This document shows, in pieces, positions 26,415 through 64,000 of a DNA stretch of 64,000 bases (its first letter is position 1; each line of letters opens with the position of its first letter). Location: the NCBI GenBank assembly GCA_964035545.1, contig OZ037767.1, positions 16,548,581-16,612,580 on the forward strand. The letters are read 5' to 3'. Origin of the DNA: Bugula neritina (lineage: Eukaryota; Animalia; Bryozoa). Under the pieces are notes generated by a model. That model saw only the letters and a program-made list of their open reading frames with translations, was not told the origin of the DNA and searched no databases. A program made the translations under genes and the position numbers.

Positions 26415-29400
26415 TTAACTTGACTGTTGTATAGCCATTTGGCAGATGAAGGCATGATTTAACCAGCACCCATAATCATTAACTTTCCTAACTCCATTCA
26501 CTTTCCACAGTCCAACACATTTTTCATCATCTGTGGAAAGAGTACACAAATAGAATAACCTGAATAACACAGTTAGACATGTACAGTAAGTAGTATTAGT
26601 TATGAAGACTTTTGAGACAAGTGCTAGACCAAAGGCTCCCCCAATAAAATCTATACTATCAATATTATGTCATATGATAATAGTAGTATATTATGTAACA
26701 TATTACTTCCATATCTTGGTTCATCAATGTGCCACAAGTAGTCTGGAATAGAACTGCCATCATTCCATCGGTAATTATTTGGAGAGAATTCTTTACCACC
26801 GAGCCATATGTCTTTAGGAAGATCTGTAGGGAGATACTTTGATATCTAGAGCTCATTACCACCATCATAGTATTAGCTTAGAATACAGGTGTAAGGATAC
26901 ATCGTAATTGTAACTGTAATTGTAATTGGCAAGTTTCCATGTAACTTTAATTCATTACATTCGCCAACCCAACTAGGGATACAAGTGTAGGAATATTACG
27001 AGACACATGTTATACTCACCAGAAAAAGCTTCAAGTTTGTTTAAAAACTCTTGACTTTCTTCCCTGGAACTTGGTATAATAGCGAGTTGTCTCCCCTTTT
27101 GCTCGGCACAGAACTCTTTAGCTTCATCCCAGTTTTTTGTTATATTAGTGTGTAGTGTGTAGAAATTCCTTCCCACCACAAACCCTGCAGTGTCTAGAAA
27201 GTAGTGCATGTGTGTATAGTTAGCAAAGCCGTAGTCAGCTGAAAATATTTTACTTACACCGCATAGAATTCCTCTCATCAGCATTATGAACAAGACTACC
27301 AACTATTAGGAAACAAGACTACCAACTATTATAGGAAACAAGACTAGGAAAACACTTACCACCAAAAATTGCTTCTAAAATATCTTGGACTGGACAATCC
27401 TCTCCTAGAATAAACAATATTTGTGAAAACTCCTGACGTTGCAGTACGTATGAAGGGAAGAATGTTTCAATGTCACATCAAGCTGTTTTTAAAACATGAT
27501 TTTGAGTATGGAAATTCCTTAGTTAACCTGGTAAACCAAATGTAAAATTTTTACCTGATGCTCCTTTGAGTCCAGGAACTCCTCTTGCACCTTTAACACC
27601 AGGAGTACCTGCAGCACCTTTGGCACCGGGTCTACCAACACTACCAGAAGCACCTTTTGCACCTTTAGCACCGGGTATGCCATTAAGTCCAGGTGTTCCT
27701 CTCAAACCGGGTCTACCAACACTTCCAGAAGCACCCATAGCACCTGTAGCACCAGGTAATCCTCTATCTCCTTTTCTTCCAGTGACACCCTGAGCTCCTT
27801 TAACACCAGTTAGACCACTAACCCCTCTGTCACCTGCAAGAAAAGTATTTTAAAAAAAGTTACTTTCCTATAAACATCAGTGGTTGGAAATGCTGTGAGG
27901 TGTTCAAAATTTGCAGATAAATATTAGAAAGGCATTTCCTTTCCTACTCAACCATACTGAGGATTGATTTTTGCATTTGAAAGGATGGCAATTGCAGCTT
28001 CGTTTGAAAAGTAATTTAATGCCATGTCACATGTCAAACTAATAATAGTATGTTCTATTATAAGTAATACACTATATTGCACAATATAATATACGATATG
28101 TAATATAACATACTATTTAGTATAATATTTTTTGTAATAATAAATGATTCACACAATGTACATTATTTGTTCACCTTTGACTCCTTGACTACCAGTGCTA
28201 CCAGAATCTCCCTTCAAACCAGTCATTCCTCTTACTCCAGTCTGTCCTTGTATTCCTTTTGATCCCTTCTGACCAATCATTCCTTTGTCTCCCTGAGCTC
28301 CATGTTGACCTGGCTCTCCTTTAGCACCAGTGTTACCAGGTGCTCCATTTCTTCCATTTTCTCCAGGTATTCCTTTATCACCTTTTGATCCTGGTATGCC
28401 GGCTAAGCCAGAAGTACCAGGATATCCTTTATTACCAGCAATGCCATCTTCACCAGGTGGTCCATTTCTTCCAGACAAACCTTTATCACCTTTCAAACCC
28501 TGAACTCCTTTTTCTCCATTGGTTCCATTTCTACCAGGAGCTCCTTTTTCTCCATGATTTCCAGGGATTCCCTTTTCACCTTTTGCTCCAGGCACACCAA
28601 CTTCTCCATTATTACCAGGTTCTCCTTTTCTACCAGTTCTGCCATCAACACCAGGAAGTCCACTTTCTCCTTTATCTCCTGACACTCCTTTCTCTCCCAT
28701 AATGCCGAGTTCTCCTTTCTGCCCAGTCGCACCATCAATACCTGGATGTCCTTCTTTTCCATTAACTCCTTTTTCACCTTTTGGTCCTTGCCTACAAGCT
28801 ATGGAATGGAAAACCATCATGTGACTCCTGAAAAAAGCAACAAGAACATACTAATTTCATGTTAGCGTAATATTGTTATTACATAATAGATATTATATAC
28901 TTTACCTAGAAGTTCAACAATTTGCTCAGGTAAAGGCAGTTCTGTGTCATCATAGCCCAAAGAACTCTCAATCTTCTTGAATGAAGTGTAGAGTAGAGCA
29001 GTGAGGTCCCCTTCTTCTGTTTTATATTTGTTTCTATTGGCTGAACTACCCCTCTCTGCTGCACTAGCAGGTTCAGATGTACTAGTTCGTTCTGATGTAG
29101 TGGAGCCAAAGTTATTGCCTGGAGTTATCCACTCATTGCTCTCTCTATTTTCATAAAACAGCACCTGCAAGCAATGGAATAGATAACTCTGTATAATTGC
29201 AATTTCAGGTGAGTAAAGAATATATTATTTATCATTACTGCGTTTCATAATATGCTACATCTCACTTCTCCACCAATCAGAAATGGAGATTCACCACTCC
29301 CTGAGTCAGTACTTTCACTCTCAGTCGAGGTGTTAGTCACAATAAACACAGAGCTTGTAGTTACTTCTGGTCTCTCTACTCTCACTTCACTTTTATTCTC

Positions 29401-30128
29401 ATGGGAGACAACCTACAGTAACGTTATTCTATTATATACTAACAAGATCTTGGCTACATTTGTTCCATGTGAATAAGTAAACTAATGATTACCTACTTTC
29501 TCTACCATCTCCTTCCAGAATCTCTTGAAGTTATCATACTGTGTTTCTAGTGAAAACAACTTTTCCTTCAACTCTTTATTTTCTTCTTCTATAATCTTTC
29601 TTTCTCTTTCACTCTCTCTTCTTACACTTCTGATCTCTTCTGTGAGCCTCACTATGAGTTTCTCTTCTACTTCCTGTTTAGTTTGTGTCAAGGTCGCAGC
29701 AGACGGTTTCTCTCTAGCAGCAGATGAGATGCTGTCAATATCTCTGTACACAGAGGAGAACTGAGTCACTGTGTACGTCAGCAATACAAACCAGAGTATG
29801 AGATTAATTAAACAGAGTACCACAACAATCCAGTGAGTACTTCCTCTCAATACTTCCTTCCATGTTGGAGTTGTTGGCTCGTTCTTTATCTGCTTCTCTT
29901 CCTAATAAATATCAGAGTCAACATTTAGTATGGGAAATACAGCATGTTGTGAGTTTCCGTATGTTATGTCCTTAGAGATTTGCAATGATATGGGCTTCCA
30001 CTTAGTAAAAAGTAGAAACATTTTTCTAGTACGAAACACACAGCATTTTAATTAGTTTTTTTTTCATGAAATGTTTCCTCCTCAAAGCCATTTTATAGAA
30101 TACAGAATATAATATCAATACTTACCAT
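26415..30128 (-). CDS. Type II transmembrane collagen/C-type lectin receptor, copy A (~722 aa; CTLD motifs EPR / VND). Exons: 30126-30128 (ATG only), 29497-29901, 29266-29412, 28906-29164, 28175-28798, 27555-27833, 27360-27404, 27020-27193, 26707-26823, 26415-26530
   Basis: [22 protein letters not shown]; coiled coil; ~99 Gly-X-Y triplets; CTLD WDEAKEFC...IWLGG...RWNDGS...DEPRY...CV...VNDYGC...FICQ; the spliced frame is open. Confidence 0.85.
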
Positions 30129-31968: not shown

Positions 31969-32009
<41 letters not shown>

Positions 32010-32015
<6 letters not shown>

Positions 32016-32430
32016 GTATACGAGAAACATTGTTATTTATTACTTTATTATAGGTAAAGTAATTACACTGATATTTCGGGTACCACTGTACCCATCTTCA
32101 GAGTAGCAATGAATGAAATTCAAAAATTAATATGTTACGTTAGACGTTACGTTACGTTAGTGGTAGAGATGTGTTGATAAATTTTGGAATTGATGTCATT
32201 GCAGTGTTCATGTATCCTGTGTGATAGGCGACGTCCGGTTTCGCCTACATATGTTTGTTAACAGGTAGCTTCAGGGCAGGTTATTTTGTAGACTAGGTTG
32301 TGAATGTGTTCTTTATTGGTTTTATCTTTGAGATTAAAATGTGAACTTAAGGGGGTTCCTTTAAATAAAATACGGGCATTGAGTTCATTTGAAAAAGAGT
32401 CTGTAATTAATTTATGACATTCAATGACAT
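32010..32430 (-). mobile_element. Penelope-like retroelement 3' fragment (GIY-YIG endonuclease remnant plus hammerhead-bearing end)
   Basis: The - strand translates as HFNLKDKTNKEHIHNLVYKITCPEATC*QTYVGETGRRLSHRIHEH, a typical PLE GIY-YIG with an internal stop; it abuts (TA)n. Confidence 0.85.
32066..32105 (-). ncRNA. Minimal type I hammerhead ribozyme
   Basis: The - strand reads tact CTGAAGA t gggtac-agtg-gtaccc GAAA ta TC agtg: intact core, 6-bp stem II, vestigial palindromic stem III. Confidence 0.75.
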
Positions 32431-32614
32431 TCAGTGATTGAGCACTTTCACCATGGTCACAAACTCAAGCTGCTAGCATTTTGCAATGCTCGTGACTCCT
32501 AGGTGACCCCTAGAGTCACTTGAGCTCTTTGGCTTGAGTTTACACACCTTTTAAATATGCTTTTGTAAAACTATAAGTTTTACTATTGCGAAGGTGTGGG
32601 CCATGGTACTCTGT

Positions 32615-32661
32615 TCTGTGCTGATGAGGGGACAAATCCCGAAACAGCTGCTGTCCACAGA
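32615..32661 (+). ncRNA. Type I hammerhead ribozyme
   Basis: tctgtg CTGATGA g ggga-caaa-tccc GAAA cagc-t-gctg TC cacaga: all three stems pair, with predicted GUC cleavage after 32655. Confidence 0.85.
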
Positions 32662-32663
32662 TT

Positions 32664-32666
<3 letters not shown>

Positions 32667-32752
<86 letters not shown>
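32667..32752. repeat. (TA)n microsatellite; a second tract lies at ~31940-32009
   Basis: Seen directly. Confidence 0.97.
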
Positions 32753-32755
<3 letters not shown>

Positions 32756-32934
32756 GCTGTAGAGTTACCAATTTTAATATGGTCAGTTGGTATGCTGGTT
32801 CCAATATATTATATAAGCATATGGCAAACACATATAATATGTGACTGAAAAAAATATGTATAGAAAAAATATGTTTTGTTTAGTTTTAGAAAATAAAAAA
32901 TCAATTAAATTACACTAGTTTATTTTATAGTTGA

Positions 32935-34229: not shown

Positions 34230-35284
34230 AGTATAAAATATTATAATAATATCATATTACAGTAGAATATAGTATAGAAATATTATATTATACAGTATTA
34301 TATATAGTCTAATATAATATCACATTACAGTATTATATAGTATAAAATAATATCCCATTACAGTATTATATAATATAATATCCCATTACAGTATTATATA
34401 GTATAATATAATATCATATTACAGTATTATATAGTATAATATAATATCACATTACAGTATTATATATAGTATAATATAATATCCCATATTACAGTATTAT
34501 ATAGTATAATATAATATCCCATATTACAGTATTATATAGTATAATATAATATCACATTACAGTATTATATAGTATAATATAACATCACATTACAGTATTA
34601 TATAGTATAATATAATATCACATTACAGTATTATATAGTATAATATAATATCACATTACAGTATTATATAGTATAATATAACATCACATTACAGTATTAT
34701 ATAGTATAATATAATATCACATTACAGTATTATATAGTATAATATAACATCACATTACAGTATTATATAGTATAATATAATATCACATTACAGTATTATA
34801 TAGTATAATATAATATCACATTACAGTATTATATAGTATAATATAACATCACATTACAGTATTATATAGTATAATATAATATCACATTACAGTATTATAT
34901 AGTATAATATAATATCACATTACAGTATTATATAGTATAATATAACATCACATTACAGTATTATATAGTATAATATAATATCACATAACAGTATTATGTA
35001 GTATAATATAATATCACATTACAGTATCATATAGTATAATATAATATCATATTACATTATTATATAGTATAATATAATATCACATTACAGTATTATATAG
35101 TATAATATAATATCATATTACAGTATTATATAGTATAATATAATATCACATTACAGTATTATATAGTATAATATAATATCATACTACAGTATTATATAGT
35201 ATAATATAATATCATATTACAGTATTATATAGTATAATATCACATTACAGTATTATATAGTATAATAAAATATCATATTACAGT
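34230..35284. repeat. AT-rich ~31-bp satellite (atataatatcacattacagtattatatagta)
   Basis: More than 30 tandem copies in the 3' flank of copy B. Confidence 0.95.
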
Positions 35285-35926: not shown

Positions 35927-38900
35927 TTACATAATTATAGCAGTTTGACAGAGAAATGATCTTTCCTTGTTACAGTAAAAATCATTAAGTTTCCAGACAC
36001 CTTGGAACCATTTCAGCTCAACACAGTTTTCACCGCTTTCTGAAAAATAATGGTGAGACAATTACTAAATTGCAGAATTACATAACTTATAGTATTTATT
36101 TGAAAAGTTGTCTTCCCTGATTAAAAAAGCGAATCTAAAGAAAGTGCTGTACCACAACCCAGATTTAGATCTGCAAACTTATTTCTGGAAATATAACTCA
36201 CAGTTGAGAGTTGAAAGTGTGGTATGTGATATGTAACACAACACGCTAAACACAACATTTGACATGTGTATTTGACAGCATTATATGACATGTAGTACAA
36301 CAAATGATGTTGTGTAACACAGTACATGTAACACAACATAACATGCTACATGTAGCCTACTACTATAGTAACAGCACGTAACGTGTACTACTACAGTAAC
36401 AGCACGTAACGTGTACTACTACAGTAGCAGCACGTAACGTGTACTACTAGCAATTTCATCACCTGAGTCGTTTGGTTCTCCAGAATGCCAGAAAGAATCA
36501 GGAATGGAGCTGCCATCAATCCACCTTTGAACACCAGAAGCTTTTGTTCCACCAACCCAAATATGTTTAATGGCTGTAATTGAAACATACTTTGTAAAAA
36601 GATCTGAAATGAAAGAAAATAATTTCTAATCATTAACATTTTGGTGGGGTTGTCCTAGTATATCTCATTTTAAACACTATTGAAAACTTTTCATAATATT
36701 TTATTTAACCATCCATGAATTCCATGTATTGAGAACGGAAGTAAAATCTTGCAAAAACGAATTTGAGAAAAACTTGGCTAGGAAGAAAAAAACATGTGTA
36801 TTAAATAGCTGTAATATTGAAAACATTTCCACAATTATGAGAATTCTAAAGTCTAATCTGACTCCATGAACTGAAGGCAGTTTAAATCAGTGAATCAATT
36901 CATTCTGTAAAGTTTTTAAAAGTTGTTAAAGTAAAAGTAATATTGATATTTAATTATTTCCTCAGAGCTGACAAGTAATATTAATGTGTATTATGTGATA
37001 CACATTTTGTGACTGTTAGTACTTAGTAGGCATCAGTTCACGTAAGTATAAGGTGTAAGGTGTAAGAATACAGGTGTAGGAATACAGGTGTAAGGATACA
37101 GGTGTATGAATACAGGTGTAGGGATACAGGTGTAGGGATACAGGTATAGGTATACAGGTGTAGAAATATAAAGAGACACACGTTATACTCACCAGAAAAA
37201 GCTTCAAGTTTGTTGAAGAACTCCTGACTCTCGTCCCTGGAACTTGGTATAATAGTAAGTTGTCTCCCCTTTTGCACGGCACAAAACTCTTTGGCCTTTT
37301 CCCAACTTTCTGATACACTAGTGTGTAGTGTGTAGACACTCTTTCCCACCAGAAATCCTGTACCTATATAGTACTATGTGTATAGTTACATTATTTTATT
37401 CAGCTGCATCATACCTTCAAATGATCTTTTTTGAAAATGTAAATTCAATAAATTCCTCTCAACATTTATTCACAGTAACATGACTTCAGGAAGGTGTGTG
37501 TGTGTGCCCGCGCGCGTGCATGGTGTGTGCGTGTGTGTGTGTATGTAGTGTGCGTCTGCAAAGTTGGTGCATGTGAGTGTGTGTGAGCTATAACGTACCA
37601 CCAGTAAACAACTTACCTCCAGTTGATGCTAGTAAAAAATCAACAAGTTCACTGCTCATTGCATCATCTCCTACAATACATTAGACACATCATAATTCAC
37701 ACCATAAAGTGTCTACTGACTGAGAATATCGGACTAACTGAAACACGTATTATACAAAATACAGTTGAGTTGAATAATTGATGATGAATTTTAAATTTAA
37801 TTTATCTGCCTTTTGCAATCACATTTAGTATTGAAATAAACCGAGTTGAGAAGTTGTTTGTACCTGGTGTTCCACCTAAACCGAGTGTTCCGTCTGCACC
37901 TGGTGTTCCATCTACACCAGGTGTTCCATCTATACCATTAGTACCTGGAGTTCCATCTAATCCGGGAGGTCCCCGTAACCCACCTGAGCATAAAGCAGAC
38001 ATTCTATTAAAACATGCTGACAAGTTGTTCCACTTCAACACAGAAGAGAAAACAGACTAATATCAATCTGAGGCTATTCATAATAATGTTGATACAAGAG
38101 TATTTCTGCTCATAGAATAGATGACTCCAATGTTGGCTTCCAGCCAACTTTTGTAGAATGCGGTAACTTGTATAATGCTAGGGTGTGATAAGTAAATACA
38201 TTTATATTTACCTATCTCCATGAGCTCTAGAGTTGTATTATATTATATATTTACCTATCTCCATGAGCTCTAGAGTTGTATTATATTATATATTTACCTA
38301 TCTCCATGAGCTCTAGAGTTGTATTATATTATATATTCACCTCTCTCCATGAGCTCTAGAGTTGTATTATATTATATATTCACCTATCTCCATGAGCTCT
38401 AGAGTTGTATTATATTATATATTCACCTATCTCCATGAGCTCTAGAGTTGTATTATATTATATATTTACCTATCTCCATGAGCTCTAGAGTTGTATTCAT
38501 TATAGTAGATATAACATCTGTAGGAAACAAATCAGGTATCACAACTTCTCTACCATCTTTTCCTGGAAGTCCAGGAGGTCCATTTACTCCCTTATCTCCC
38601 TTTCTACCATCTACCAATACACATAGTATAAGAACAACAAATCATATAGGTAGATACACTGCTGTATATGTAACAAAGCTATTGTTATCTCACCTAATCC
38701 AGGTATTCCAGGTGATCCAGGTGAGCCAGAATCTCCCTTGTCTCCAGTCAGTCCTTGATTACCTGTAACAAAAATATAACCAGTCAAAAGGGAATATCCA
38801 TAAATTGTAATGAAAACTTGGTAAGCAAGACATAAATATAATGATGGCAAATAGTTGTATAACTTGATGATGTCATACTTCAACATAAAATATAACTGAC

Positions 38901-40411
38901 AGTCATAGCAGTAACCTTTTTCACCTCGAACTCCTTGCATACCAACTTTACCAGGATCTCCCTTTAACCCACGAGCTCCTCTCACACCGGGTTCTCCTTT
39001 GATTCCGACTGATCCCTTTTTTCCAGATATCCCCTTGTCTCCCTTTTCTCCAGAAACTCCTGGTCTTCCACGGTTGCCGGGTTCTCCGTCTTCACCATTA
39101 TCTCCCCGCATTCCTTTATCACCCTTCTCACCTTGAGCTCCAGCTGGTCCGGAAACACCAGGCTCACCTTTTAAACCAGTTGCACCATCTATACCTGGAA
39201 GTCCGTGTATTCCATCATCTCCTCTATCCCCCTTTGGTCCTTGTCGACAAGCTACACAGGATCATGTATTGTGAGTATGATAATCTGAGTGACACAACTT
39301 TTATACCAGATTTGACTTTAGACTAGAAAATACTCACCAAGTAGTCTAATAATATCTTCAGGTAGAGGTAGGTTGGTGTCATCATAGCTGGGGTACCTTT
39401 CTTTAGTTGGTAAGGGGGTGTGATGGAAGCCCCTTAAACTTGTCTTCATTATCTTAGGTTCATAGCTATGTTGGTTTCCCTGAGTGATGTTGCGCACTTC
39501 TTCAGTGTTGTAAACACTTTCATTGGTTGATTGTGCAGGTGAGTAGTGAAGCTCACTCGCATTGGTGTCTTCTAGCACCTCTCCACCAATCAGAATTGGA
39601 GATTCACCATTCCCTGAGTCGGTACTTTCACTGTCTATAGAGGTGTTATTCATAATAAACACAGAGCTTGTAGTTACTTCTGGTCTCTCTACTCTCACTT
39701 CACTTTTATTTTCATGGGAGACAACCTACAGTAAAATTATTCTATTATATACCAACAAGATCTTGGCTACGCTTGTTTCATGTGAATAAGTAAACTAATG
39801 AATACATACTTTCTCTACCATCTCCTTCCAGAATCTCTTGAAGTTATCATATTGTGTTTCTAGTGAGAGCAACTTTTCCTTCAACTCTTTATTTTCTTCT
39901 TCTATAATCTTTTTTTCTCTTTCACTCTCTCTCCGTATGTCTCTTATCTCTTCCACTTCCTGTTTAGTTTGTGTCAAGGTCGCGGCAGACGGTTTCTCTC
40001 TAGCAGCAGATGAGATGCTGTCAATATCTCTGTACACAGAGGAGAACTGAGTCACTGTGTACGTCAGCAATACAAACCAAAGTATGAGATTAATTAAACA
40101 GAGTACCACAACAATCCAGTGAGTACTTCCTTTCAATACTTCCTTCCATGTTGGAGTTGTTAGCTCGTTCTTTATCTGCTTCTCTTCCTGATAAATATCA
40201 GAGTCAACATTTAGTATGAGAAATACAGCATGCTGTGAGTTTCTGTGTTATGTTCTTAGAGATATCTGCAATGTGGTGTTTTACTTATTGAAAATTAGAA
40301 ATTTTTTTCTAGTATGAAACGCACAACATTTTAATTAGCTTTTCTTTTAAGAAATGTATTCTCCTCAAAGCTATTTCATAGAATACAGAATATAATATCA
40401 ATACTCACCAT
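35927..40411 (-). CDS. Type II transmembrane collagen/C-type lectin receptor, copy B (~637 aa; CTLD motifs EPN / LND). Exons: 40409-40411, 39810-40187, 39338-39725, 38916-39251, 38694-38762, 38470-38610, 37864-37983, 37617-37670, 37193-37363, 36463-36603 (alternative in-frame acceptor ~30 nt further in), 35927-36039
   Basis: Same TM/coiled-coil exon as A with a 9-aa deletion; interrupted collagen; CTLD WEKAKEFC...IWVGG...WIDGS...WHSGEPNDS...ENCVE...LNDFYC...FLCQ. Confidence 0.85.
38200..38497. repeat. ~43-bp tandem repeat of the exon end plus donor site (7 copies)
   Basis: The - strand unit is acaactctagagctcatggagatag|gtaaatatataatataat; paralog D has only 2 copies (54005-54080). Confidence 0.92.
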
Positions 40412-42020
40412 GTTGAAGGAGATGCTGAAAGTTTATCTTATTTAATGATCATTAACTTTGTCTAAAATGCCGCAATGTTTTTGTCTGCAGTTATATTTGA
40501 GTGAAATTGCCAAAAGTAACAAGACTTAGTTGCTGTGAAGAGAGAAAGGGGTGTAAGGGGGTGGAAGAGGTGACACATATAGAATATGTCGTACTTTAAA
40601 TACAAATATAATTATGGTATTTTTCTCAAGACAATTGACTCAGGAGGGGGTCACATAGTTGCCTGAATTAAAGGAATATGAAATCAATTTCTATTTCGCG
40701 CATCAAGTCCATATTTTCATTTCACCCTTTCTACTCAATCCACTCCTTTTATTTATCTACACCTCTCACCAAACTACTCAAAGCAAAAACTCTCTAAAAA
40801 TAATATTTAGAGATAAAACACTGTACTTATTCTAACAACTAGAGCAGTTTTCATTGTCAACATCATATCATAAGAAGTTCCAGGTTCCAAGTTCCAAGTG
40901 TAGGGGAATACCCTTGTAGGAAGATTTGTCCCAGGGATGACATTACAGATTGGTCACAAACACATCATTATGTCAATAATACCAAGTAATATATTATATA
41001 GTAGCTTTTGGCAAGTGAGAAAAACCAAAGTCCAGTTTCTAGTCATAAGAAACCATGTTTAGAGAACTCAGAGTTAGAGTATTGTTGGAGCATGTGTATG
41101 ATAGGGACTCAGCAATGTTCATAGGAAACAATAATATTTGTATAAAGGTGACAACTCCTAATAGTAGTTATACAGTTTTCAACCACATTGAGAGTTATCC
41201 TCACATGTACAAATATTGATTCAGTTACTTTGAGGTATTATATGGAATATGATAACAATTGAGAAATATTTATTGTTTCTAACTAAATATAGCTCTATTA
41301 TAAAGCATGATGCTGTAGAAACATAACCGATGAATTCTAGTACATTAATTCACAGATGGTATTATAATATGTAACAAATTAGTAGAATTTACAATCAGCT
41401 GAGATATGACACTGTGATACTTTTAAAATTTCTTTTTCTACCCAATTACTTTCACAATTCATAAATATCACCTAGAGTTGCATCAGGAAACAGTAACCAT
41501 GGCGATGAGACAATAACATATAATTTATGCTGTGAAAAGATAGCATCAACTGCTCCATATTCTAAATACATTTTCAGCTTTTCATGCAGAAAGTTGATAT
41601 TTCTGTACAAACAACTGAACTGACCAGTAAATCAACAACTTCTTCATTTTGATGTTGTTTCAGCTTTTGGTATGAGAATTGTATATGCTGTTTTTGGTTC
41701 TTTGTATAAAACCTATTCCTTTTGAGCATTTAGAGTTTGAAAAAGGTGTTTTAACAAATGTCTTGTTTTAATTTTAATTTTGATAATATTGTATATAGAA
41801 ATATAATTTGTATATATAGCAAGCAGTCTAAACACAAGAATTATAAAAATATATGCGTTATTCAATCAAGCAACTACAAACCATAAATTTTAGTGTGTTA
41901 TAATAATAACACTGTATTATATACTTGGGAATCTCAAACTGACAGCTACTTTGGGAATTTAATAACAATCTATGATAAACTTATATGATTGGCTGATATA
42001 ATGATGAGTCATTGCAGTAA

Positions 42021-44513: not shown

Positions 44514-45228
44514 TTACATAATAGCAGTTTGACAAAGAAATAATCTTTCAATGTTACAGTAAACATCATTAAGTCTCCAGACACCTTGGTACCATTTTAG
44601 CTCAACACAGTACTCACTGCTTCCTGGAAAATAATGGTGAGACAATTACTAAACTTTCGAACAAAAGAAATGGAACTTATTTGAAGAGTTGTCTCCCATG
44701 CTTGAAAAGCTGATCCAAAAAATATTCATAACAAACAAGATTCAGATCTGCAGAATCACTTCTATAGATGTCACACATGTCACACAATATGTGATTGATG
44801 GTGTGGCTTATGTAACAAATAGCCTACTATACAGTCCTAACCCGTAGCGTACTACTACAGTGACAGCAGGTTACATGTACTACTACAGTGACAGCAGGTT
44901 ACATGTACTACTACAGTGACAGCACGTTACATGTACTACTACAGTGACAGCATGTTACATGTACTACTACAGTGACAGCACGTTACATGTACTACTACAG
45001 TGACAGCACGTTACATGTACTACTACTACAGTGACAGCATGTTACATGTACTACTACTACAGTGACAGCACGTTACATGTACTACTACATTGGCAGCACG
45101 TTACATGTACTACTACAGTCCTATCACATGAGTCATTTGGTTCACCAGAATGCCAGAGAGAATCAGGAAAGGAGCTGCCATCAATCCACTTTTAAACACC
45201 GGAAGTTTTTGTTCCACCAACCCAAATG
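44514..45228 (-). pseudogene. Orphan last two CTLD exons (B-type, EPN/LND), disabled
   Basis: IWVGGTKTSGV*KWIDGS...GEPND has an in-frame TAA at 45192-45194; last exon 44514-44623 reads YCVELKWYQGVWRLNDVYC; no upstream exons are recognisable. Confidence 0.85.
44848..45118. repeat. 25-28-bp tandem repeat (acagtgacagcacgttacatgtactact)
   Basis: About 10 copies; the homologous intron of B (36355-36450) has about 3. Confidence 0.9.
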
Positions 45229-48500: not shown

Positions 48501-49366
48501 TATTTTTAAAGAGTCCTTTATCCATATCATTTGTGCAGTATTGAATTGTTCACATACATCTCAGCTATCATCTATAAATATAACTTCAGGACAGTGTGCT
48601 CAAGTTTATATATTATATATTATAATAAACAGACGAGAGGACACTATAAAACTAGTATACTAATGATTCTTTGCTGTTGCAGCACTCAGACTAAGCACTA
48701 GGCTGACCTGAATGTATAGAACACAAGCTATACATGTTGCTGAGAGAAATAAACAAATTAAACCACCTGCTAGTATATATGTAGATATTAGGATGGCTAT
48801 AAGTTCAAGACATGTGTGGGCTAAATATACATTCTAAAACCAATATGCTTGAGCGTACTATCGCAGTTGTATTTAGCTGATAGCCAATAAGATGAGTGGT
48901 AATAACTTGATAATGCATAAGTTTAAGGGTCAAACAAGAACAAATGTTTATAATTTAATACGTAATTGCAAAACATACCTATTCTTTCATACAACTCACC
49001 GACTTTTCTATTGCTGAAGCTTATAGAAAAGTAGCCTTTACTCAGCTGCTTATTCCTGCAGGTGACAGAGGAGTAAGTGGTCCAACTGGTGTTAAAGGAG
49101 CTCAGGGTGCCACTGGAAGAAAGGGAGATAGAGGACTACCAGGTGCAAAAGGTGCTTCTGGAAGTGTTGGAAGACCCGGTTTGAGAGGAACACCTGGAAT
49201 TAATGGCATACCTGGTGCTAAAGGTGCTAAAGGTGCTTCTGGTAGACCCGGTGCTAAAGGTGCCACAGGTGCTCCCGGTGTTAAAGGTGCTAAAGGAGTT
49301 CCTGGAGAGAAAGGAGGCAGATTAGGAAGTGTTGGACCTTGGAGAAGGGGAGGGGGGAGGGGATAA
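45557..49366 (+). CDS. Type II transmembrane collagen receptor, copy C, lacking the lectin domain (~659 aa). Exons: 45557-45559 (ATG), 46204-46590, 46785-47130, 47233-47856, 48002-48316, 49062-49366
   Basis: Alternative TM (GISLVFCIINLLLWVCLLLYGVF); coiled coil; PTSTSE repeats; partially duplicated collagen exon; open frame ending GEKGGRLGSVGPWRRGGGRG*; no CTLD exons before gene D. It could be a young truncated pseudogene. Confidence 0.6.
46620..46682 (+). pseudogene. tRNA-derived fragment (Val-TAC-like pseudo-tRNA or SINE head)
   Basis: ggctcctgTGGTGTAATGATtagcgcgtctgctTACaagcgggaggtcttGGTTTTGAATCCC has an A-box, a degenerate B-box and an anticodon-like arm; the 3' acceptor strand is missing. 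Confidence 0.6.
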
Positions 49367-49608
49367 AGTTATCTCTGCCTTCCCTAAGTGGTTTAATCAT
49401 GTTGTTTTCATGAGAAATTTCAAACTGATATACTTATAGTATTAGTTACATATGATCTGTAATAGACAAGAATGATAATTATAATACCAAATTACACAGA
49501 CATTGTGTGACATAGATATAGGCCTACTTGATTATATACAAAACTAAATTAATTATGTAAATACAACTGATATGTTATAAAAGTCCCCAGCAAACTTAGC
49601 TATATTAT

Positions 49609-49804
<196 letters not shown>

Positions 49805-52056: not shown

Positions 52057-54865
52057 ATGGTGAGTATTGATATTATATTCTGTATTCTATGAAATAGCTT
52101 TGAGAAGAAAACATTTCATGAAAAAAACCAATTAAAGTGCTGTGTGTTTCGTACTAGAAATTTTTTTCTACTTTTTACCAAGTGAAAGCCCATATTATTG
52201 CAAATCTCTAAGAACATAACACACAGAAACTCACAACATGCTGTATTTCTCATACTAAATGTTGACTCTGATATTTATCAGGAAGAGAAGCAGATAAAGA
52301 ATGAGCCAACAACTCCAACATGGAAGGAAGTATTGAAAGGAAGTACTCACTGGATTGTTGTGGTACTCTGTATAATTAATCTCATACTTTGGTTTGTATT
52401 GCTGACGTACACAGCGACTCAGCTCTCCTCTTTGTACAGAGATATTGAGAGCCTCTCAGCTGCTACTAGAGAGAAACCGTCTGTTGCGACCTTGACACAA
52501 ACTAAACAGGAAGTAGAGGAGAAACTGATAGTGAGGCTCACAGAAGAGATAAGAAACATACGTAGAGAAAGTGAAAGAGAAAGAAAGAGTATAGAAGAAG
52601 AAAATAAAGAGTTGAAGGAAAAGTTGTTTTCACTGGAAACACAATATGATAACTTCAAGAGATTCTGGAAGGAGATGGTAGAGAAAGTATGTATTCATTA
52701 GTTTTCTAATTCTAATTCTAATTCACGTAGCTGACATCTTTTTGCTATATAATAAAATAATTTTACTGTAGGTTGTCTCCCATGAGAATAAAAGTGAAGT
52801 GAGAGTAGAGAGACCAGAAGTAACTACAAGCTCTGTGTTTATTATGACCAACACCACGACTGAGAGTGAAAGTACTGACTCAGGGAGTGGAGAATCTCCA
52901 ATTCTTATTGGTCGAGAGGTGCTAGAAGACACCAGTACAAATGCAGTTAACTACTCACTTGTACAACCGACCAATGAAAGTGTTGTTTACAACATTGAAG
53001 ATGCAAGCAACATCACTCAGGGAAACCAACATAGCTATGAACCTAAGATGAAGAAGGCAAGTTTCAGGGGCTTTCATCAGATCCCCTTACCAAATGAAGA
53101 AAGTTACCCCAGCTATGATGACACCAACCTACCTCTACCTGAAGAAATTATTGGACTACTTGGTGAGTATTTTCTAGTCTAAAGTCAGATCTGGTATAAA
53201 AGTTGTGTCACTCAGGTTATGATACTCACAATACATGATTCTGTGTAGCTTGTCGACAAGGACCAAAGGGGGACAGAGGAGATGATGGAACACACGGACT
53301 TCCAGGTATAAATGGTTCAACTGGTTTAAAAGGTGAGCCTGGTGCTTCCGGATTAGTCGGAGCTCAGGGTGAGAAAGGTGAAAAAGGAATGCGGGGAGAT
53401 AATGGTGAAGACGGAGAACCCGGCAACCGTGGAAGACCAGGAGTTTCTGGAGAAAAGGGAGACAAGGGAATATCTGGAGAAAAGGGATCAGTTGGAGTGA
53501 AAGGAGAACCCGGTGTGAGAGGAGCTCGTGGGTTAAAGGGAGATCCTGGTAAAGTTGGTATGCAAGGAGTTCGAGGTGAGAAAGGTTACTGCTATGACTG
53601 TCAGTTATATTTTATGTTGAAGTATGACATCATCAAGTTATACAACTATTTGCCATCATTATATTTATGTCTTGCTTACCAAGTTTTTATTACAATTTAT
53701 GGATATTCCCTTTTGACTGGCTATATTTTTGTTACAGGTAATCAAGGATTGACTGGAGACAAAGGAGATTCTGGCTCACCTGGCTCACCTGGATTACCTG
53801 GATTAGGTGAGATAACATTAGCTTTGCTACATATAGCAGTGTATCTACCTATATATGATTTGTTGTTCTTATACTATGTCTATTGGTAGATGGTAGAAAG
53901 GGAGATAAAGGAGCAATCGGATATCCTGGACTTCCAGGAAAAGATGGTAGAGAAGTTGTGATACCTGATTTGTTTCCGACAGATGTTATATCTACTATAA
54001 TGAATACAACTCTAGAGCTCATGGAGATAGGTAAATATATAATATAATACAACTCTAGAGCTCATGGAGATAGGTGAATATTAATGTAGGTATGTACTTA
54101 TCACACCCTAGCATTATACAAGTTACCGCATTCTATAAAAGTTGGCTGGAAGCCAACATTGGAGTTATCTATTCTATGAGTAAAAATACTCTTGTATCAA
54201 CATTATTATAAATATAGCCTCAGCTTGATATTAGTCTGTTTTCTCTTCTGTGTTGAAGTGGAACAACTTGTCAGCATGTTTTAATAGAATGTCTGCTTTA
54301 TGTTCAGGTGGGTTACGGGGACCTCCCGGATTAGATGGAACACCTGGTGTAGATGGAGCACCTGGTGCAGATGGAGAACCAGGTGTAGATGGAACACCAG
54401 GTGTGGATGGAACACCCGGTCGAGATGGAACACCAGGTACAAACAATTACCTAACGCAGTGATTTTTAATACTTGAAGTAGCTACAAAGATGCAGCAAAA
54501 TTAAACTTTACTCGTCATCAATTATTCAACTCAACAGCATTTGTGTATAACACGTGTTTCGGTTAGTCCTATATTCTAAGTCTGTAGACACTTTACGATG
54601 TGACTTATGATGAGTCTATTGTATTGTAGGAGATGATGCATTGAGCAGTGAACTTGTTGATTTTTTACTAGCATCAACTGGAGGTAAGTTGTATACTGGT
54701 GGTACGTTATAGCTCACACACACACTCACATGCACCAACTTTGCAGACGCACACTACATACACACATACACGCACACACATGCACACACACTCACATACA
54801 CACACACTCACATACACGCAAACGCACACACGCACACTCACACAATCACACACACAGCACACACC

Positions 54866-54897
<32 letters not shown>

Positions 54898-54962
54898 CGT
54901 ACGCACCTACACACACGTACGCACCTACACACACGCACGCACCTACACACACGCACGCACGT

Positions 54963-54994
<32 letters not shown>

Positions 54995-55085
54995 AATCAC
55001 ACACACAGCACACACCCACACGCACACACACACACACATGTACGCACCTACACACACGCACGCACCTACACACACGCACGCACGT

Positions 55086-55117
<32 letters not shown>

Positions 55118-55267
55118 AATCACACACACAGCACACACCCACACGCACACACACACACACATGTACGCACCTACACACACGCACGCACACACACACACAC
55201 GTACACACACACTCACGCACCACACAGCACACACACTCACACACACACTCACACACACACACTTACT

Positions 55268-55298
<31 letters not shown>

Positions 55299-56548
55299 AC
55301 GCACACACGCGCACGCACACACACAGCACACACAGCACACACACTCACACACACACACACACTTACTCACACACACACTCACACACACACTCACACACAC
55401 ACACACACTTACTCACACACACACACACACACTCACACACGCACACACACGCACACGCACACGCACACGCACACGCACACACAAGTATAGAGACATGATC
55501 ATTTTGAATAACTTGAACTGTAAGTTTGACTTTATTGGCAATTGTATACAAATAGTATAAAGTTATTTTATTTATTCAATTTCACAATTGTTTTTAAGGG
55601 GACGTCTTTCGGGTTGGCACAACGTATTATAGTTTACATAAGACTCCTAAGACAGACTGGCAAAATGCCAAAACTTTCTGCACACAGAAAACAGGTGGAA
55701 AACTTGCACAGTTACCAACTTCAAGTACAGAACTTCAAAGTTTGCTGAACAAACTGAGATCTTTTAAAAGTTTGTACAAATCATAGAACTATATATACTT
55801 TCACTGAGTTTAACAACCTACAGTTGAGTCTCACTACTTTAACTATCTGATAAACAGAAGTAAAGCATCTGTTGAAAGTATAAAGGATATGGATATAGCT
55901 GATTTGCCTATAACTCATTTAAAAAGATGAAATGGTTTGGCTTTGTTTTAGGTTTGAAGTTTATTCAATTGAGTTCCTTTCATGATTTTACTACATTGCG
56001 TTGTTATACTGAAAGTTTGTTGTCAATTGCAGGCGATTATGATCGTGTTTGGGTTGGAGGAAGTAGATTTTATGGCACTCTTTATAGATGGAATGATGGT
56101 AGTTCTATCCCTAACTCTCTTTGGAATCCTGGGCAACCAGATAATTGGAGTAAGGTTTTTCTCTGTAAGAAATACAGATTAGACAATCTGAGAGTGAAAG
56201 AAGTTATCTTCACATGTTAATAATTATTACGTAATAATATAATAGTTAATAGTATATAATGGTTATAATTATACTGTACCAGATGAACCTGTCATATTTA
56301 TATTAAATATAGAAAACCATTATAATAGAGCAAAGTATAGTTTGCTATTACTCTGCTAAGAAAGGCCAGTCCATATTTTATGGTCCAATCACTGATGCTC
56401 TTAGTAAACTATTGCCCAATAATAACTGATGTACTTTGTTGTTCTAGATAACCAAGAGAACTGTGTTGAATTGTTGCTCAACTCTGGAAAACTCAATGAT
56501 CGTGGATGTATTGGACAGCTGTCGATTCTCTGCCAGATATCAAGTTAG
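52057..56548 (+). CDS. Type II transmembrane collagen/C-type lectin receptor, copy D (~638 aa; CTLD motifs QPDNW / LND). Exons: 52057-52059, 52282-52686, 52772-53162, 53249-53584, 53738-53806, 53890-54030, 54308-54436, 54630-54683, 55599-55769, 56033-56149, 56448-56548
   Basis: Stalk nearly identical to B; [13 protein letters not shown]...VWVGG...RWNDGS...WNPGQPDNW...ENCVE...LNDRGC...ILCQ; the spliced frame is open. Confidence 0.87.
54714..55482. repeat. Compound (CA)n microsatellite in intron 8 of copy D
   Basis: Seen directly; the homologous intron of B (~37495-37590) has only a short tract. Confidence 0.95.
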
Positions 56549-57552: not shown

Positions 57553-57896
57553 GCCTAGGGCCACACTGTGCGTATTTTCGCATGCGAAAATTGAAATCAC
57601 AAGTAGCAAAGGTGTCCACTGTGCGCGTCGAGAAAACATTCGCACTTGTTGTTCAGCATTTTCAACGCAAGTGCGAATCGTCTCTGTCGTCGTCACCTAA
57701 TTGGCTGGTAGTTATTCAGCGAGCCCAATTTCTTTATTTTAGTGTTACATTCCAGTAAATTTCGTTTTATTGAAAGCGAGTGCGATTTAAAAATGAAAGC
57801 TTTATTTATCACGCATCACTGATGCTACAGTGGACACCTTTGCTACTTGTGATTTCAATTTTCGAATGCAAAAATACGCACCGTGTGGCCCTAGGC
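57553..57896. mobile_element. MITE, PIF/Harbinger (Tourist)-like
   Basis: ~70-bp TIRs gcctagggccacactgtgcgtatttt...aaaatacgcaccgtgtggccctaggc, with TAA on both sides. Confidence 0.85.
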
Positions 57897-59695: not shown

Positions 59696-62600
59696 ATGGT
59701 AAGTTCCCTGTATATTTTAGTGTATTTTACTTATACTTTATAGTTTATATAATATATAAAAGTTAAGAAATTTATTATATTTATAAATTATTATTATGGT
59801 ACCTGGGGTAGTTCTAGTTTTCAGTCAATAAAAGAATAGCTGGCTATGATATCTTACAGACTATACCCCAAACCCTTAGGCTTAGGCGATGCATGTTGTT
59901 ATAATTGTTTCAATAACTTCTAGCATTTAAAACAGCTCTCTGTCAAATCTAAATAGTTAACACAATGCTAAGTGAATCTGTTGTTTTTCTATTAGATCAT
60001 TGAAATAACATTATATATCTTGTTTCTGATAAAATTTAGGTGTAATTGATTAATTAAAAGTAGTTAATAAATTTTTTATGTTGTTATGTTAAAAAGACTG
60101 CTTGCAATTATATTAAAAGTATATACCATAAACTATTTAGGACTTTTTAATTTTCCTTATAATATGTGATGGCTCCCGTCAGTTTTGGTCTCTTGGCATT
60201 ATTCGCTATTGTTAGTTATAAGGGGTTTTATCTATAGTTGTCATAAATAGGTCAGTTTTAGCTTTTAGTGTGTAATAGTCAATTAACATGTGCTCTTTCT
60301 AGCTGTCCAATCAGTTTTGTGATATCTGCTATGGTTTATGAATGATTGGTGTTTTAATGAGCCATTCCATGGTTGGCAAGCTGGTCACGTGATTAGAACA
60401 TAATAGCGCGAACTTTAATAATAGTTGAAATAGCGGCGTAGTGTAGAGCGCAACGTAATTAGGTATAATTTGACTGAGAATTGTTACTAATAATAAACAT
60501 GGCGACTGGATCGCGCTGCAAGTTAATAGAAAACATATATTGACAATTTAAAAGAATGTTTCTACATTGAAAATTATGGACAAGGACTGAAGAGTAGGGG
60601 TGATAATAGTAATGATGAACTTAGTGACAACAGTGATGCAAAAAAGTTAGATTTTATTATGAAACCACGTGGCATTATAGTATTAATCTCTCAGGATAAT
60701 CATCAAAATGTTCTCATTATACTGAACTCAACTTTGAAATATTGATTAAGATATTGCAGATATGAATTTTAAATTAATATTTTCATGATCAGCATAAAAA
60801 ACCACCCCTAGTAACTAACTTTTGGGCTGATGGAGCTAATTGAAGACACTGTTGCTAGGTAGATAAACAACGAATTTAGTACAATTTTGAGTCGCCGAAC
60901 TTTGACTGTTAATTACTCGCAATAATAAAAGGCGTTTGTTGTGGACCGCTGTGTGTATAACCTGGCATATTTCTGGTTCTATTTGACTGATTTTAAAAAT
61001 TTAAAGTGCAATGTGATCACAAAGTCCTACTCTATTCATCCACATCAAAAAGTAAAAATCTTGGATGACCCCCAAGAGACCAAAAATGACAGCAGCCATC
61101 ACATATATTGTGTAATAGTAGACAGCCACAATAGTTGATATAAAATTATTATAGCATTAGTACAAGCATTAATGTAATTACCTATAACTTAAGGTATCAG
61201 AGTATATTATGTAATTACAGCAATTCATTTTATATTCATACAAACTTTGTTGAAGGAAGCAGAAAAGAAGAGTTCAAGGACATCAGAGACACACAGAGGT
61301 GTTCACGGAATATCTTTGGTGTTCTGTATTATAAATCTTCTCCTGTGGGTTTGCTTACTGTTCTACGGTGTATTTGAAGTATCAAACTTGTACAGAGAAG
61401 TTGATAGTCTTACAGCTGCTACTAGAGAGAAACCGCCTGCTGCGATCTTGACACAAACTAAACAGGAAGTAGAAGAAAAACTCATATCGAGGTTCACAGA
61501 GGACATCAAACGTGTTCGAAGAGAAAATGAAAGGGAAAGAAAGAGTATAGAAGAAGAAAACAAAGAGTTGAAAGAAAAGTTGCTTTCACTAGAAACACAA
61601 TATGATAACTTCAAGAGATTCTGGAAGGAGATGGTGGAGAAAGTAGGTAGTCGTTAGTTTACTTATTCACATGAAACAAGCGTAGCCAGTCATTTCTTGG
61701 TATATAATAGAATTAGTTTACTGTAGGTTGTCACCCATGAGAGTAAAAGTGAAGTGAGAGTAGAGAAACCAGAAGTAACTCAAGCTCTGTGTTTATTATG
61801 ACTAACACCTCGACTGAGAGTGACAGTACTGACTCAGGGAGTGGGGAATCTCAATTTCTGATTGGTAAAGAGGTGGGATATAGTATATTGTGTTAATGCA
61901 GTAATGATAAATATATATTTTACTTACCTGAAATTGCAATAACAGAGTAATCTATTCCATTGGTTGCAGGTGCTGTTTCATGAGAATAGAGAGAGTAATG
62001 AGTGGATAACTCCAGGCAATAACTTTGGCTCCACTACATCAAAACGAACTAGTACATCTGAACCTGCTAGTGCAGCAGAGATGGGTAGTTCAGCCAATAG
62101 AAACAAATATAAAGCAGAAGAAGGGAACCCCACCGTTCTTCACCACACTTCATTCAAGAAGATTGAGAGTTCTTTGGGCTATGGTGACACAGAACTGCCT
62201 TTACCTGAGCAAATTGTTGAACTTCTAGGTAAAGTATATAATATCTATTATGTAATAACAATATTACGCTAACATGAAATTAGTATGTTCTTGTTGCTTT
62301 ATTCAGGAGTCACATGATGGTTTTCCATTCCATAGCTTGTAGGCAAGGACCAAAAGGTGAAAAAGGAGTTAACGGAAAAGAAGGACTTGCAGGTATTGAT
62401 GCTGCGACTGGGCAGAAAGGAGAACTCGGCATTGTGGGAGAGAAAGGAGTGTCAGGAGATAAAGGAGAAAGTGGACTCCTTGGTGTTGATGGCAGAATTG
62501 GTAGAAAAGGAGAACCTGGTAATAATGGAGAAGTTGGGGTGCCTGAAGCAAGAGGTGAAAAGGGAATGCCTGCGGAAATCATGGAGAAAAAGGAGCTCCT

Positions 62601-64000
62601 GGTAAAAACGGAGCCGATGGAGAAAAAGGAGTTCAGGGTTTGAAAGGTGATAAAGGTTTTCCTGGAAGAAATGGGATCAAAAGGTGATAGAGGAATACCT
62701 GGAAAAATGGAAGAAATGGAGCACAAGGTAACACTGGTGCCAAAGGAGAGCCAGGTCAACCTGGAGCTCAAGGAGACAAGGGAATGATTGGTCAGAAGGG
62801 ATCAAAAGGAATACAAGGACAGACTGGAGTAAGAGGAACGTGACTGGCTTGAAGGGAGATTCTGGTAGCGCTGGTAGTCCAGGAGTCAAAGGTGAACAAA
62901 TAATGTACATTGTGTGAATCATTTATCATTACAAAAAATATTATACTAAATAGTATGTTGTATTACATATCGTATATTATATTGTGCAATATAGTGTATT
63001 ACTTATAATAGAACATACTATTATTAGTTTGACATGTGAAATTGCATTAAATTACTTCTCAAACGAAGCTGCAATTGCCATCCTTTCAAGTGCAAAAATC
63101 AATCTTCAGTATAGTTGAGTAGGAAAGCAAATGCCTTTCTAATATTTATCTGCAAATTCTGAACATCTCACAGCATTTCCAACCACTGATGTTTATGGGA
63201 AAGTAACTTTTTTTAAAATATTTTTTCTGCGGGTGACAGAGAAGTTAGTGGTCTAACTGGTGTTAAAGGAGCGCTCAGGGTGTCACTGGAAGAAAGGGAG
63301 ATAGAGGATTACCTGGTGCTACAGATGCTATGGGTGCTTCTGGAAATGTTGGAAGACCAGGTTTGAGAGGACCACCTGGACTTAATGGCATACCCGGTGC
63401 TAAAGGTGCAAAAGGTGCTTCTGGTAGTGTTGGTAGACCCGGTGCTAAAGGTGCTGCAGGTACTCCTGGTGTTAAAGGTGCAAGAGGAGTTCCTGGACTC
63501 AAAGGAGCACCAGGTAAAAATGTTACATATGGTTTACCAGGTTAACTAAAGAATTTCCATATTCAAAATCATGTTTTAATAACAGCTTATTGTGACATTG
63601 AAACATTCTTCCCTTCATACGTACTGCAATGTCAGGAGTTTTCACAAATATTGTTTATTCAAGGAGAGGATTGTCCAGTCCAAGATATTTTAGAAGCAAT
63701 TTTTGGTGGTAAGTGTTTACCTAGTCTTGTTTCCTAATAGTTGGTAGTCTTGTTCATAATGCTGATGAGAGGAATTCTATGCGGTGTAAGTAAAATATTT
63801 TCAGCTGACTACGACTTTGCTAACTATACACACATGCACTACTTTCTAGACACTGCAGGGAATTTCTACATACTGCACACTAATATAACAAAAAACTGGG
63901 ATGAAGCTAAAGAGTTCTGTGCCGAGCAAAAGGGGAGACAACTTGCTATTATACCAAGTTCCTGGGACGAGAGTCAGGAGTTTTTCAACAAACTTGAAGC
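59696..64000 (+). pseudogene. Transmembrane collectin copy E, pseudogene; runs off the window end
   Basis: ATG|gtaag at 59696-59698 and an intact exon at 61256-61642. Lesions: 1-nt deletion and stop in the exon starting 61727, several frameshifts in the collagen exon from 62336, acceptor AG>GG at ~63231, a 2-nt insertion at ~63272, and a 15-nt deletion in the CTLD exon from ~63850. Confidence 0.85.
60165..61103. mobile_element. Non-autonomous DNA transposon (~940 bp) in intron 1 of copy E
   Basis: 32-bp imperfect TIRs tgtgatggctcccgtcagttttggtctcttgg / ccaagagaccaaaaatgacagcagccatcaca with TA duplication; the empty site is visible in paralogous sequence at ~51290-51325. Confidence 0.85.

Follow-up and report, generated by a model that had tools for sequence, protein, structure and literature searches.

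A tandem array of predicted membrane-anchored collagenous C-type lectin genes with exchanged heads in the bryozoan Bugula neritina

CL-P1 (COLEC12, SCARA4, or SRCL) is a receptor with a short cytoplasmic tail, a type II membrane anchor, a coiled coil, a collagen rod, and a C-terminal C-type lectin head of the QPD (galactose) type. The gene is conserved and has been reported from vertebrates only, in a study that detected no class A scavenger receptor in any other animals (PMC3567963). Within this class, SCARA3 stops at the collagen, and its closest relative, SCARA4, bears the lectin head (PMC3567963). A 2024 survey with Bugula neritina among its genomes traced 'MBL', which joins collagen to a carbohydrate-recognition domain (CRD), back only to urochordates (PMC11312191). 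MACITs, which are membrane collagens of type II orientation whose coiled coil lies next to the membrane, do occur in protostomes (PMC4678570). Here we describe a 64,000-nucleotide stretch of the genome of the bryozoan B. neritina (GenBank assembly GCA_964035545.1, contig OZ037767.1, positions 16,548,581–16,612,580 of the forward strand; hereafter, the window) that carries predicted genes for collagenous lectins of comparable design.

Querying the assembly that contains the window in six frames with the transmembrane (TM) exon of gene D identified 17 TM/coiled-coil exons in the genome, none of which contains a stop codon. Fifteen of these exons lie within one ~150-kb array that starts in the window, and two are found ~4 Mb off on the same contig. 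The window contains five of the 17 and forms the proximal end of a tandem array specific to bryozoans. The remainder of the array and the second locus were also catalogued exon by exon, and the count rises to ~19 gene copies (A to S) once two 5′-truncated copies without a TM exon, G and M, are added. Gene J contains stops and is broken. Lectin exons are missing from four members (C, O, P, and Q), whose predicted chains finish in a Gly/Arg(/Glu)-rich tail, and collagen exons are duplicated in C and Q. Because the Gly/Arg-rich end of C resembles those of O, P, and Q, we regard C as a member of a headless subfamily and not as an accident. Where the original prediction counted five related receptors in the window, we find three genes that are open and carry a head (A, B, and D), alongside the headless C, the pseudogene E, and one head relic. 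The five genes are distributed from 26.4 kb to the window end, A and B being minus-strand genes and the other three plus-strand genes.

These genes probably constitute a bryozoan-specific array of type II collagenous lectin receptors, that is, trimeric, multivalent glycan receptors whose modules are reassorted by intronic recombination. Collagen sequence implies trimers, and by analogy with collagens, collectins, and class A scavenger receptors, the chains would trimerise through the coiled coil and the collagen. On the same analogies, each trimer would display three Ca2+-dependent sugar-binding heads at the cell surface, with specificity presumably set by the EPN or QPD(-aromatic) position. 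The array has grown by tandem and inverted duplication accompanied by pseudogene formation, and intronic recombination has reassorted three modules: the 5′ end with the TM segment, the stalk, and the head. In gene B, an ancestral head of the beta type was replaced by an EPN head of the alpha type (the two head clades described below) at an intronic (CA)n microsatellite.

Relation to described collagenous lectins

The domain order of CL-P1/COLEC12, to which the original prediction likened these receptors, is borne out in the predicted gene models. However, a profile search detects no sequence homology to CL-P1 in the N-terminal/coiled-coil module, and the CL-P1 lectin domain (PDB 2ox9) matches the array heads weakly (E 0.1 and 0.04) and ranks far below other lectin domains. 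Whereas CL-P1 is a conserved low-copy gene, the bryozoan family comprises 17 TM exons, 15 in one array; it also differs by a mucin-like spacer between coil and collagen and by the lack of a neck between collagen and head. Separate searches with the TM/coiled-coil and lectin exons gave no 1:1 orthology to COLEC12.

Class A scavenger receptors (SR-A1, MARCO, SCARA3, SCARA5) are homotrimeric type II glycoproteins in which a coiled coil and collagen precede a C-terminal domain that can be exchanged or is lacking, and the headless C, O, P, and Q mirror SCARA3 beside SCARA4. The array contains no SRCR heads, and its exchange is recent and between tandem paralogues. Because searches found no sequence homology to these receptors other than in the domains they share, the resemblance is probably convergent. 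With the soluble collectins (MBL, SP-A, SP-D, CL-K1, conglutinin), the array genes share a collagen rod and a C-type head with an EPN/QPD and (W)ND site, and a one-residue Gly-X-Y break in D recalls the collectin kink. Unlike soluble collectins, they have a predicted membrane anchor in place of a signal peptide and Cys-rich N-terminus, and no alpha-helical neck. The closest analogues of the headless members are the MACITs (XIII, XXIII, XXV; C. elegans col-99), which differ from the array genes in having no lectin head and in being conserved and low-copy; no MACIT was returned at E 1e-3 or better by the TM/coiled-coil search, which used one profile of a fast-diverging coiled coil. Invertebrate C-type lectin expansions consist mostly of secreted single-domain lectins. 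The array resembles the lineage-specific ones in its tandem growth, fast evolution, non-canonical QPN/EPR motifs, and many pseudogenes, but places the domain on a membrane-anchored collagen stalk and reassorts whole modules. From these sequence comparisons, the family reads as a lineage-specific analogue, a variant of the membrane-collectin/class A scavenger receptor design, and not as a member of COLEC12.

The lineage-specific, expanded family foreseen by the original prediction is seen both in the 17 TM exons and in profile searches, which find bryozoan-type fragments only. A profile built from the five TM/coil exons returned six matches among 1.84 billion representative proteins, all of them short unspliced frames on bryozoan-type contigs from metagenomes or run assemblies, and the three more distant of the six (~28% identity) have no closer counterpart in the B. 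neritina genome. Among the distant relatives, at least L017 and L018 have the spacer-end motif (LPLPEEII-type), and L018 also has the collagen start ACRQG; the family therefore reaches beyond the genus. The nearest public sequences come from two Joint Genome Institute (JGI) metagenome samples and are ~6–30% different from the window at the protein level. A metagenome scan for the locus with the TM/coil alignment gave 460 pattern matches, none of which was confirmed. No description of the family was found by full-text literature searches on Bugula or bryozoan lectins, invertebrate transmembrane collectins, and mollusc type II collagen lectins, and the 'collectin-12' labels in the mollusc literature are automatic best-hit names.

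The combination of a type II anchor, a coiled coil, collagen, and a C-terminal recognition head, known until now from vertebrates alone (PMC3567963), is here predicted in a protostome, where it was apparently built independently; an independent origin would make it a repeatedly reachable solution for multivalent surface recognition. Lectins that join collagen to a CRD had previously been traced only to chordates (PMC11312191). The products of the array are candidate receptors in a colonial animal that harbours a vertically transmitted bacterial symbiont, and they may act in the recognition of microbes or particles, in symbiont handling, or in self/non-self recognition.

Gene architecture and predicted topology

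Each gene follows the same order of parts: a TM exon that continues into a long charged helix; a Ser/Thr-rich spacer of one or two exons with a conserved LPLPE-type motif at its end; Gly-X-Y exons; and a C-type lectin domain encoded by three exons (none in C). Two stalk architectures can be told apart. B, D, and S (stalk type II) have one long spacer exon and four collagen exons, and A and the other copies (stalk type I) have two long collagen exons and two spacer exons, reduced to one in C, F, K, and O–R. The TM exons of the genome have no in-frame ATG. An alignment of the regions upstream of A, B, D, and S revealed a mini-exon that ends in CAACATG, is followed by GTGAGT or GTAAGT, and lies ~190 nt upstream of a good acceptor. 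Its equivalent, an exon ending in ATG before GTAAGT, is found 0.4–1.9 kb upstream in every stalk type I copy except O, so that an exon 1 ending in ATG before GTRAGT precedes the TM exon in 16 of 17 copies and is missing in O. The coding share of exon 1 is the ATG only, the last three bases of the exon, in almost every copy (the window and L001–L015); the more distant relatives L020 and L021 have the ATG within the TM exon.

The predicted N-terminus thus consists of the exon 1 Met, ~20 charged residues, and a 23-residue hydrophobic segment. An AlphaFold2 model of the TM/coiled-coil exon, computed from a five-paralogue alignment, contains two helices (res. 2–50 and 56–122) with a mean predicted local distance difference test (pLDDT) score of 82.5 that exceeds 90 in the long helix; the helix after the TM segment measures ~67 residues. 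A type II membrane orientation is a reasonable reading of this model, because there is no other signal sequence and both the collagen and the Ca2+ lectin domain, with its disulphide bonds, have to lie outside the cell. Every junction predicted for D is GT-AG, with consistent phases, and the Gly-X-Y register crosses the exon joins, with its single one-residue break at the junction between the third and fourth collagen exons. The last collagen exon is joined in phase straight to the first lectin exon, leaving no room for a helical neck, and the predicted N-termini contain no Cys-rich oligomerisation segment. The collagen exons match Pfam Collagen (E 2e-37 to 1e-8). The TM/coil and spacer exons have no Pfam match above threshold, and the look-alikes of the TM/coil exon in the ESM Atlas, with a best score of 0.81, carry no meaning.

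The first collagen exon of D contains the sequence P-G-K-V-G-M (window 53542–53559), also present at the matching place in B. It presumably resembles the Hyp-Gly-Lys-X-Gly motif by which MBL, ficolins, and C1q bind serine proteases, and is a lead only.

The same exons could instead encode soluble collectins, secreted after cleavage of the hydrophobic segment or shed as ectodomains, that opsonise or agglutinate particles in body fluid or mucus. We consider this unlikely. The domains that follow the membrane segment, collagen and a lectin head, are those of soluble collectins; however, the ~20 charged residues lead into a hydrophobic helix that continues as a helix in the model and is longer than a typical signal peptide, and neither the Cys-rich oligomerisation region nor the helical neck of a soluble collectin is present. 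As for shedding, MACITs are released by furin, and the helical stalk contains the basic clusters RNIRR and RERK, but no clear R-X-K/R-R site lies outside the helix. Membrane collagens of the MACIT kind do exist in invertebrates (PMC4678570). Membrane-anchored receptors remain the probable products of the array.

Lectin heads and their exchange between paralogues

For each of the three head exons, a profile was made from every paralogous copy; the three profiles match collinear parts of the same solved domains in the PDB (E 4e-4, 6e-6, and 2e-3), and the lectin exons fit mannose receptor 2, a tunicate lectin, CD23, and DC-SIGN better than they fit CL-P1. One Cys in lectin exon 1, three in exon 3, a WVGG/WVGA motif, and a second Trp are invariant. 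By these features, the predicted heads are short-form C-type lectin domains with four cysteines. They fall into two deep clades, alpha (A, E, B, and three broken relics) and beta (D, F, G, H, I, K, L, M, N, R, and S), of which the beta, or D-type, head is the majority type in the array. The primary-site tripeptide and nearby residues read EPR-Y-G in A and E, EPN-D-S in B, EPN-N-I in R, QPD-N-W in D, G, M, and N, QPD-N-Y in I and S, QPN-N-F in F and K, and QPN-N-Y in H and L. All five ligand positions (E/Q-P-N/D, the Glu before Cys, and N-D) are kept in 10 of 14 heads (B, D, G, H, K, L, M, N, R, and S), and we take the loop spacing of the B and D heads to match that of rat MBP-A. A six-frame reading recovers, each in its place, the motifs first noted for A (EPR/VND), B (EPN/LND), and D (QPDNW/LND), as well as the missing head of C. 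The Q/E and D/N combinations at the mannose-/galactose-type switch positions, including the hybrid QPN, amount to a natural mutant series.

The heads also bear on whether these proteins form a structural family, in which membrane collagens with lectin-like ends would organise cuticle or an adhesive or mineralised wall in the manner of invertebrate biomineralisation lectins. In favour of this, a cuticle and a skeleton are both laid down by bryozoans, members that have no head are plain membrane collagens with a charged tail, and several heads are without full Ca2+ ligands. Yet the complete sugar/Ca2+ site persists in those 10 heads with MBP-like spacing, and variation is found at the classical specificity positions and the surrounding loops, as expected from sugar recognition and not from a matrix scaffold, which makes a structural role doubtful.

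Heads and stalks were exchanged between paralogues, as the module trees conflict and the breakpoint is intronic, and the notion of a conserved stalk with exchanged heads stands. In a maximum-likelihood (ML) tree of the three lectin-exon alignments, A, E, and B are set apart from the other 11 heads (support 100/100), and the D head is closest to G and M, with 90% nucleotide identity; approximately unbiased (AU) tests on this tree reject the grouping of B with D (p 7e-4) and of B with D and S (p 2e-5). The TM exon tree instead unites A, B, D, and S (100/100), and the AU test rejects A+B+E (p 1e-5). The stalks of B and D had been described as almost identical, introns included; they are indeed related across the introns but only closely so, with 88.9% nucleotide identity over 2.8 kb and 76–96% amino-acid identity per exon. 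Their heads, with 38–52% identity, are as different as had been claimed.

The history of the swap can be read from S, in the second locus, which is collinear with D throughout its upstream region, stalk, collagen-to-head intron, and all three lectin exons. Homology between S and B ends at window position 37494, at the (CA)n repeat, and ~136 unrelated bases then lead to lectin exon 1 of B; the head region of D, introns included, is homologous to other beta heads. Since S is collinear with D and B breaks at (CA)n, B is the recombinant, and the pairing of a type II stalk with a beta head came first. For this reason, we rejected D as the gene with the swapped head. The microsatellite (~130 bp in S) begins ~266 nt into the same intron in B, D, and S alike and is missing from genes with a type I stalk; in B, we interpret it as the junction at which the head was swapped by recombination. 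A contig of a public metagenome associated with bryozoans, L022, aligns collinearly with B on both sides of this breakpoint and has a type II stalk, an EPN/LND head, and all exons open. At the sequence level, the B arrangement is kept in a sibling lineage and is not a private accident of the assembly; the head swap at an intronic microsatellite provides a datable exon-shuffling event.

Self-comparison of the window revealed a mirrored duplication in which A (27028–29750) matches E (64000–61389) with 92% identity and B (37494–41138) matches D (54807–51339) with ~89%, introns included. An assembly or haplotype artefact was rejected as the origin of the mirrored copies, which are 8–12% apart and structurally different. 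A is itself chimeric, B/D-like from the promoter to 29263 in the first spacer exon and with a C-like stalk beyond. E, the inverted counterpart of A at 92% nucleotide identity, has a C-like TM segment and is a pseudogene. It contains at least six frameshifting indels (near 61781, 62574, 62674, the site of the 71-nt loss, 62704, 62841, and 63273), of which one is a 1-nt deletion in spacer exon 1, four affect the main collagen exon (+2, −71, −1, and +2 nt), and one adds 2 nt to the second collagen exon. Several collagen Gly positions are gone, and the head, mostly past the window edge, reads EPR/VND.

The B-type head relic upstream of C retains neither lectin exon 1 nor a stalk. Similar relics, with lectin exons 2 and 3 on the minus strand, are found upstream of F (L001, about 5845–5916) and K (L005, about 3987–4522). 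Because a broken B-type relic lies upstream of each C-like gene (C, F, and K), it was already in the duplicated unit. An inversion that split C from its head and left the relic at 44.5–45.2 kb behind was rejected, since relics are also found upstream of the head-bearing relatives F and K and the tail of C is like those of the headless O, P, and Q. Upstream of the truncated copy G, where its TM exon would be expected, there is a reverse-transcriptase frame of a non-LTR (long terminal repeat) retrotransposon on the plus strand (L002, ~2394–4300; 441 and 193 residues open), and in a sibling lineage an integrase-bearing element lies beside a family member (contig L024, 9629–11918, minus strand).

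The coil end and the collagen start are near-invariant across paralogues, so that mixed trimers could form. A combinatorial display, in which chains with different heads or none co-assemble and intronic recombination makes new stalk-head pairs, is nonetheless improbable in our estimate. If it were true, ~10–15 genes would give many more glycan specificities and valencies, the headless chains would be valency tuners, and the display could possibly serve symbiont sorting or colony self/non-self recognition.

Selection and points against the receptor model

Pairwise dN/dS (the ratio of non-synonymous to synonymous substitution rates) between paralogues is 0.41–0.56 per lectin exon and ~0.44 for the pooled TM/coil exon, with single pairs between 0.16 and 0.55. 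B and its orthologue L022 give 0.57 in the stalk and 0.58 in the head, at a dS of 0.13–0.18. Two young pairs exceed 1 on few changes (F–K, 1.5; H–L, 1.1). Amino-acid variety peaks at the positions immediately flanking the tripeptide and in the loops on both sides of the N-D motif. Values of 0.4–0.6 in all modules point to relaxed purifying selection, and the diversifying selection of the original prediction is not demonstrated; the pattern fits weakly constrained genes with variable positions around the binding site.

That the array is mostly decaying, unexpressed DNA whose open frames are young duplicates is very improbable: E and J are broken, G and M have no TM exon, head relics are scattered, dN/dS is high, and no RNA run matched. 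Against this, none of the 17 TM exons is interrupted, and every module has a dN/dS below 1 at dS values up to 0.5. B and L022 are separated by ~70 non-synonymous and 38 synonymous changes as against ~82 and 26 under neutrality (rough chi-square p ~0.007), and there is conservation of the splice sites, of the intron phases, and of an exon 1 that ends in ATG.

Several observations weigh against the interpretation as functional trimeric glycan receptors. The splice junctions, the start codon, expression, and retention in the membrane as opposed to shedding are predictions; protein collections yielded no spliced product, all matches being unspliced frames on genomic contigs, and a search of public runs for the locus returned one DNA run and no RNA run. 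Short unitigs of that DNA run cover B but skip the repeat at 37491–37555, which places the junction outside this coverage. The domain evidence for the heads is assembled exon by exon, and lectin exons 1 and 3 match positions 2–36 and 78–107 of Pfam Lectin_C (PF00059) with 15–20 bits each, alone below the gathering score. Four heads are without the canonical Ca2+ ligands, A and E with EPR, F with LTD, and I with LYN. Individual genes also deviate: the coil of B has a 9-residue (27-nt) in-frame deletion, with the same nine residues gone in P; the acceptor of the B spacer exon is changed from AG to AA at 39711–39712, AG being kept in the orthologue L022; and the first collagen exon of C has one Gly replaced by Cys. 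Finally, dN/dS values of 0.4–0.6 are high, so that constraint is weak.

Feature coordinates and surrounding sequence

Table 1 Predicted features of the collagenous lectin genes in the window (window positions).
Feature	Positions	Strand	Remarks
Gene A	26415–30128	−	open in all exons; EPR/VND head
A exon 1 ATG	30126–30128	−	
A TM/coiled-coil exon	about 29497–29901	−	
A spacer exons	29266–29397, 28906–29149	−	
A collagen exons	28175–28798, 27555–27833	−	Pfam Collagen E 2e-37
A lectin exons	about 27020–27184, 26707–26823, 26415–26530	−	
A EPR motif	26714–26722	−	VND in place of WND
Gene B	35927–40411	−	type II stalk architecture, alpha-type EPN head, LND
B exon 1 ATG	40409–40411	−	
B TM/coiled-coil exon	39810–40151 + 36 nt upstream	−	
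B long spacer exon	39333–39710	−	
B collagen exons	38914–39252, 38692–38766, 38546–38614, 37853–37990	−	
B (CA)n-rich microsatellite	37495–37585	−	collagen-to-head intron; ~90 bp
B lectin exons	37182–37358, 36455–36574, 35930–36040	−	
B EPN motif	36470–36478	−	
B-type head relic	44517–45227	−	lectin exon 2 (45123–45227) with in-frame stop; exon 3 (44517–44621) open
Gene C	45557–49366	+	headless
C exon 1 ATG	45557–45559	+	candidate
C TM/coiled-coil exon	about 46222–46590	+	
C spacer exon	46800–47132	+	
C collagen exons	47232–47849, 47998–48324, 49061–49315	+	second is a duplicated copy
C last exon, stop	49364–49366	+	collagen into Gly/Arg-rich tail
Gene D	52057–56548	+	open; QPDNW and LND
D exon 1 ATG	52057–52059	+	
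D TM/coiled-coil exon	52282–52686	+	
D spacer exon	52787–53167	+	
D collagen exons	53248–53586, 53734–53808, 53886–53954, 54301–54447	+	
D (CA)n-like microsatellite	54699–55560	+	collagen-to-head intron; expanded, ~850 bp
D lectin exons	55598–55777, 56029–56154, 56444–56545	+	
D QPDNW motif	56134–56148	+	
Pseudogene E	59696–64000	+	~1.6 kb more past the window
E exon 1 ATG	59696–59698	+	

The spaces and introns of the array contain (TA)n tracts and tandem arrays of 33-bp and 43-bp units (49611–49802, 32583–32831, 34246–35284, and 38203–38504), where the guanine-cytosine (GC) content drops to 20–29%. An unrelated neighbour gene on the minus strand (15854–17602) encodes HEAT/TOG-type repeats (Pfam HEAT, CEP104-like TOG, and CLASP_N), and its exons probably extend across 1–17.6 kb. 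Downstream of this frame on its own strand, in what are probably its introns, the 2.4–14.6 kb region is occupied by long tandem arrays of 16–45-bp units, located at 2402–5093, 7351–8044, 9171–9632, and 13898–14621.

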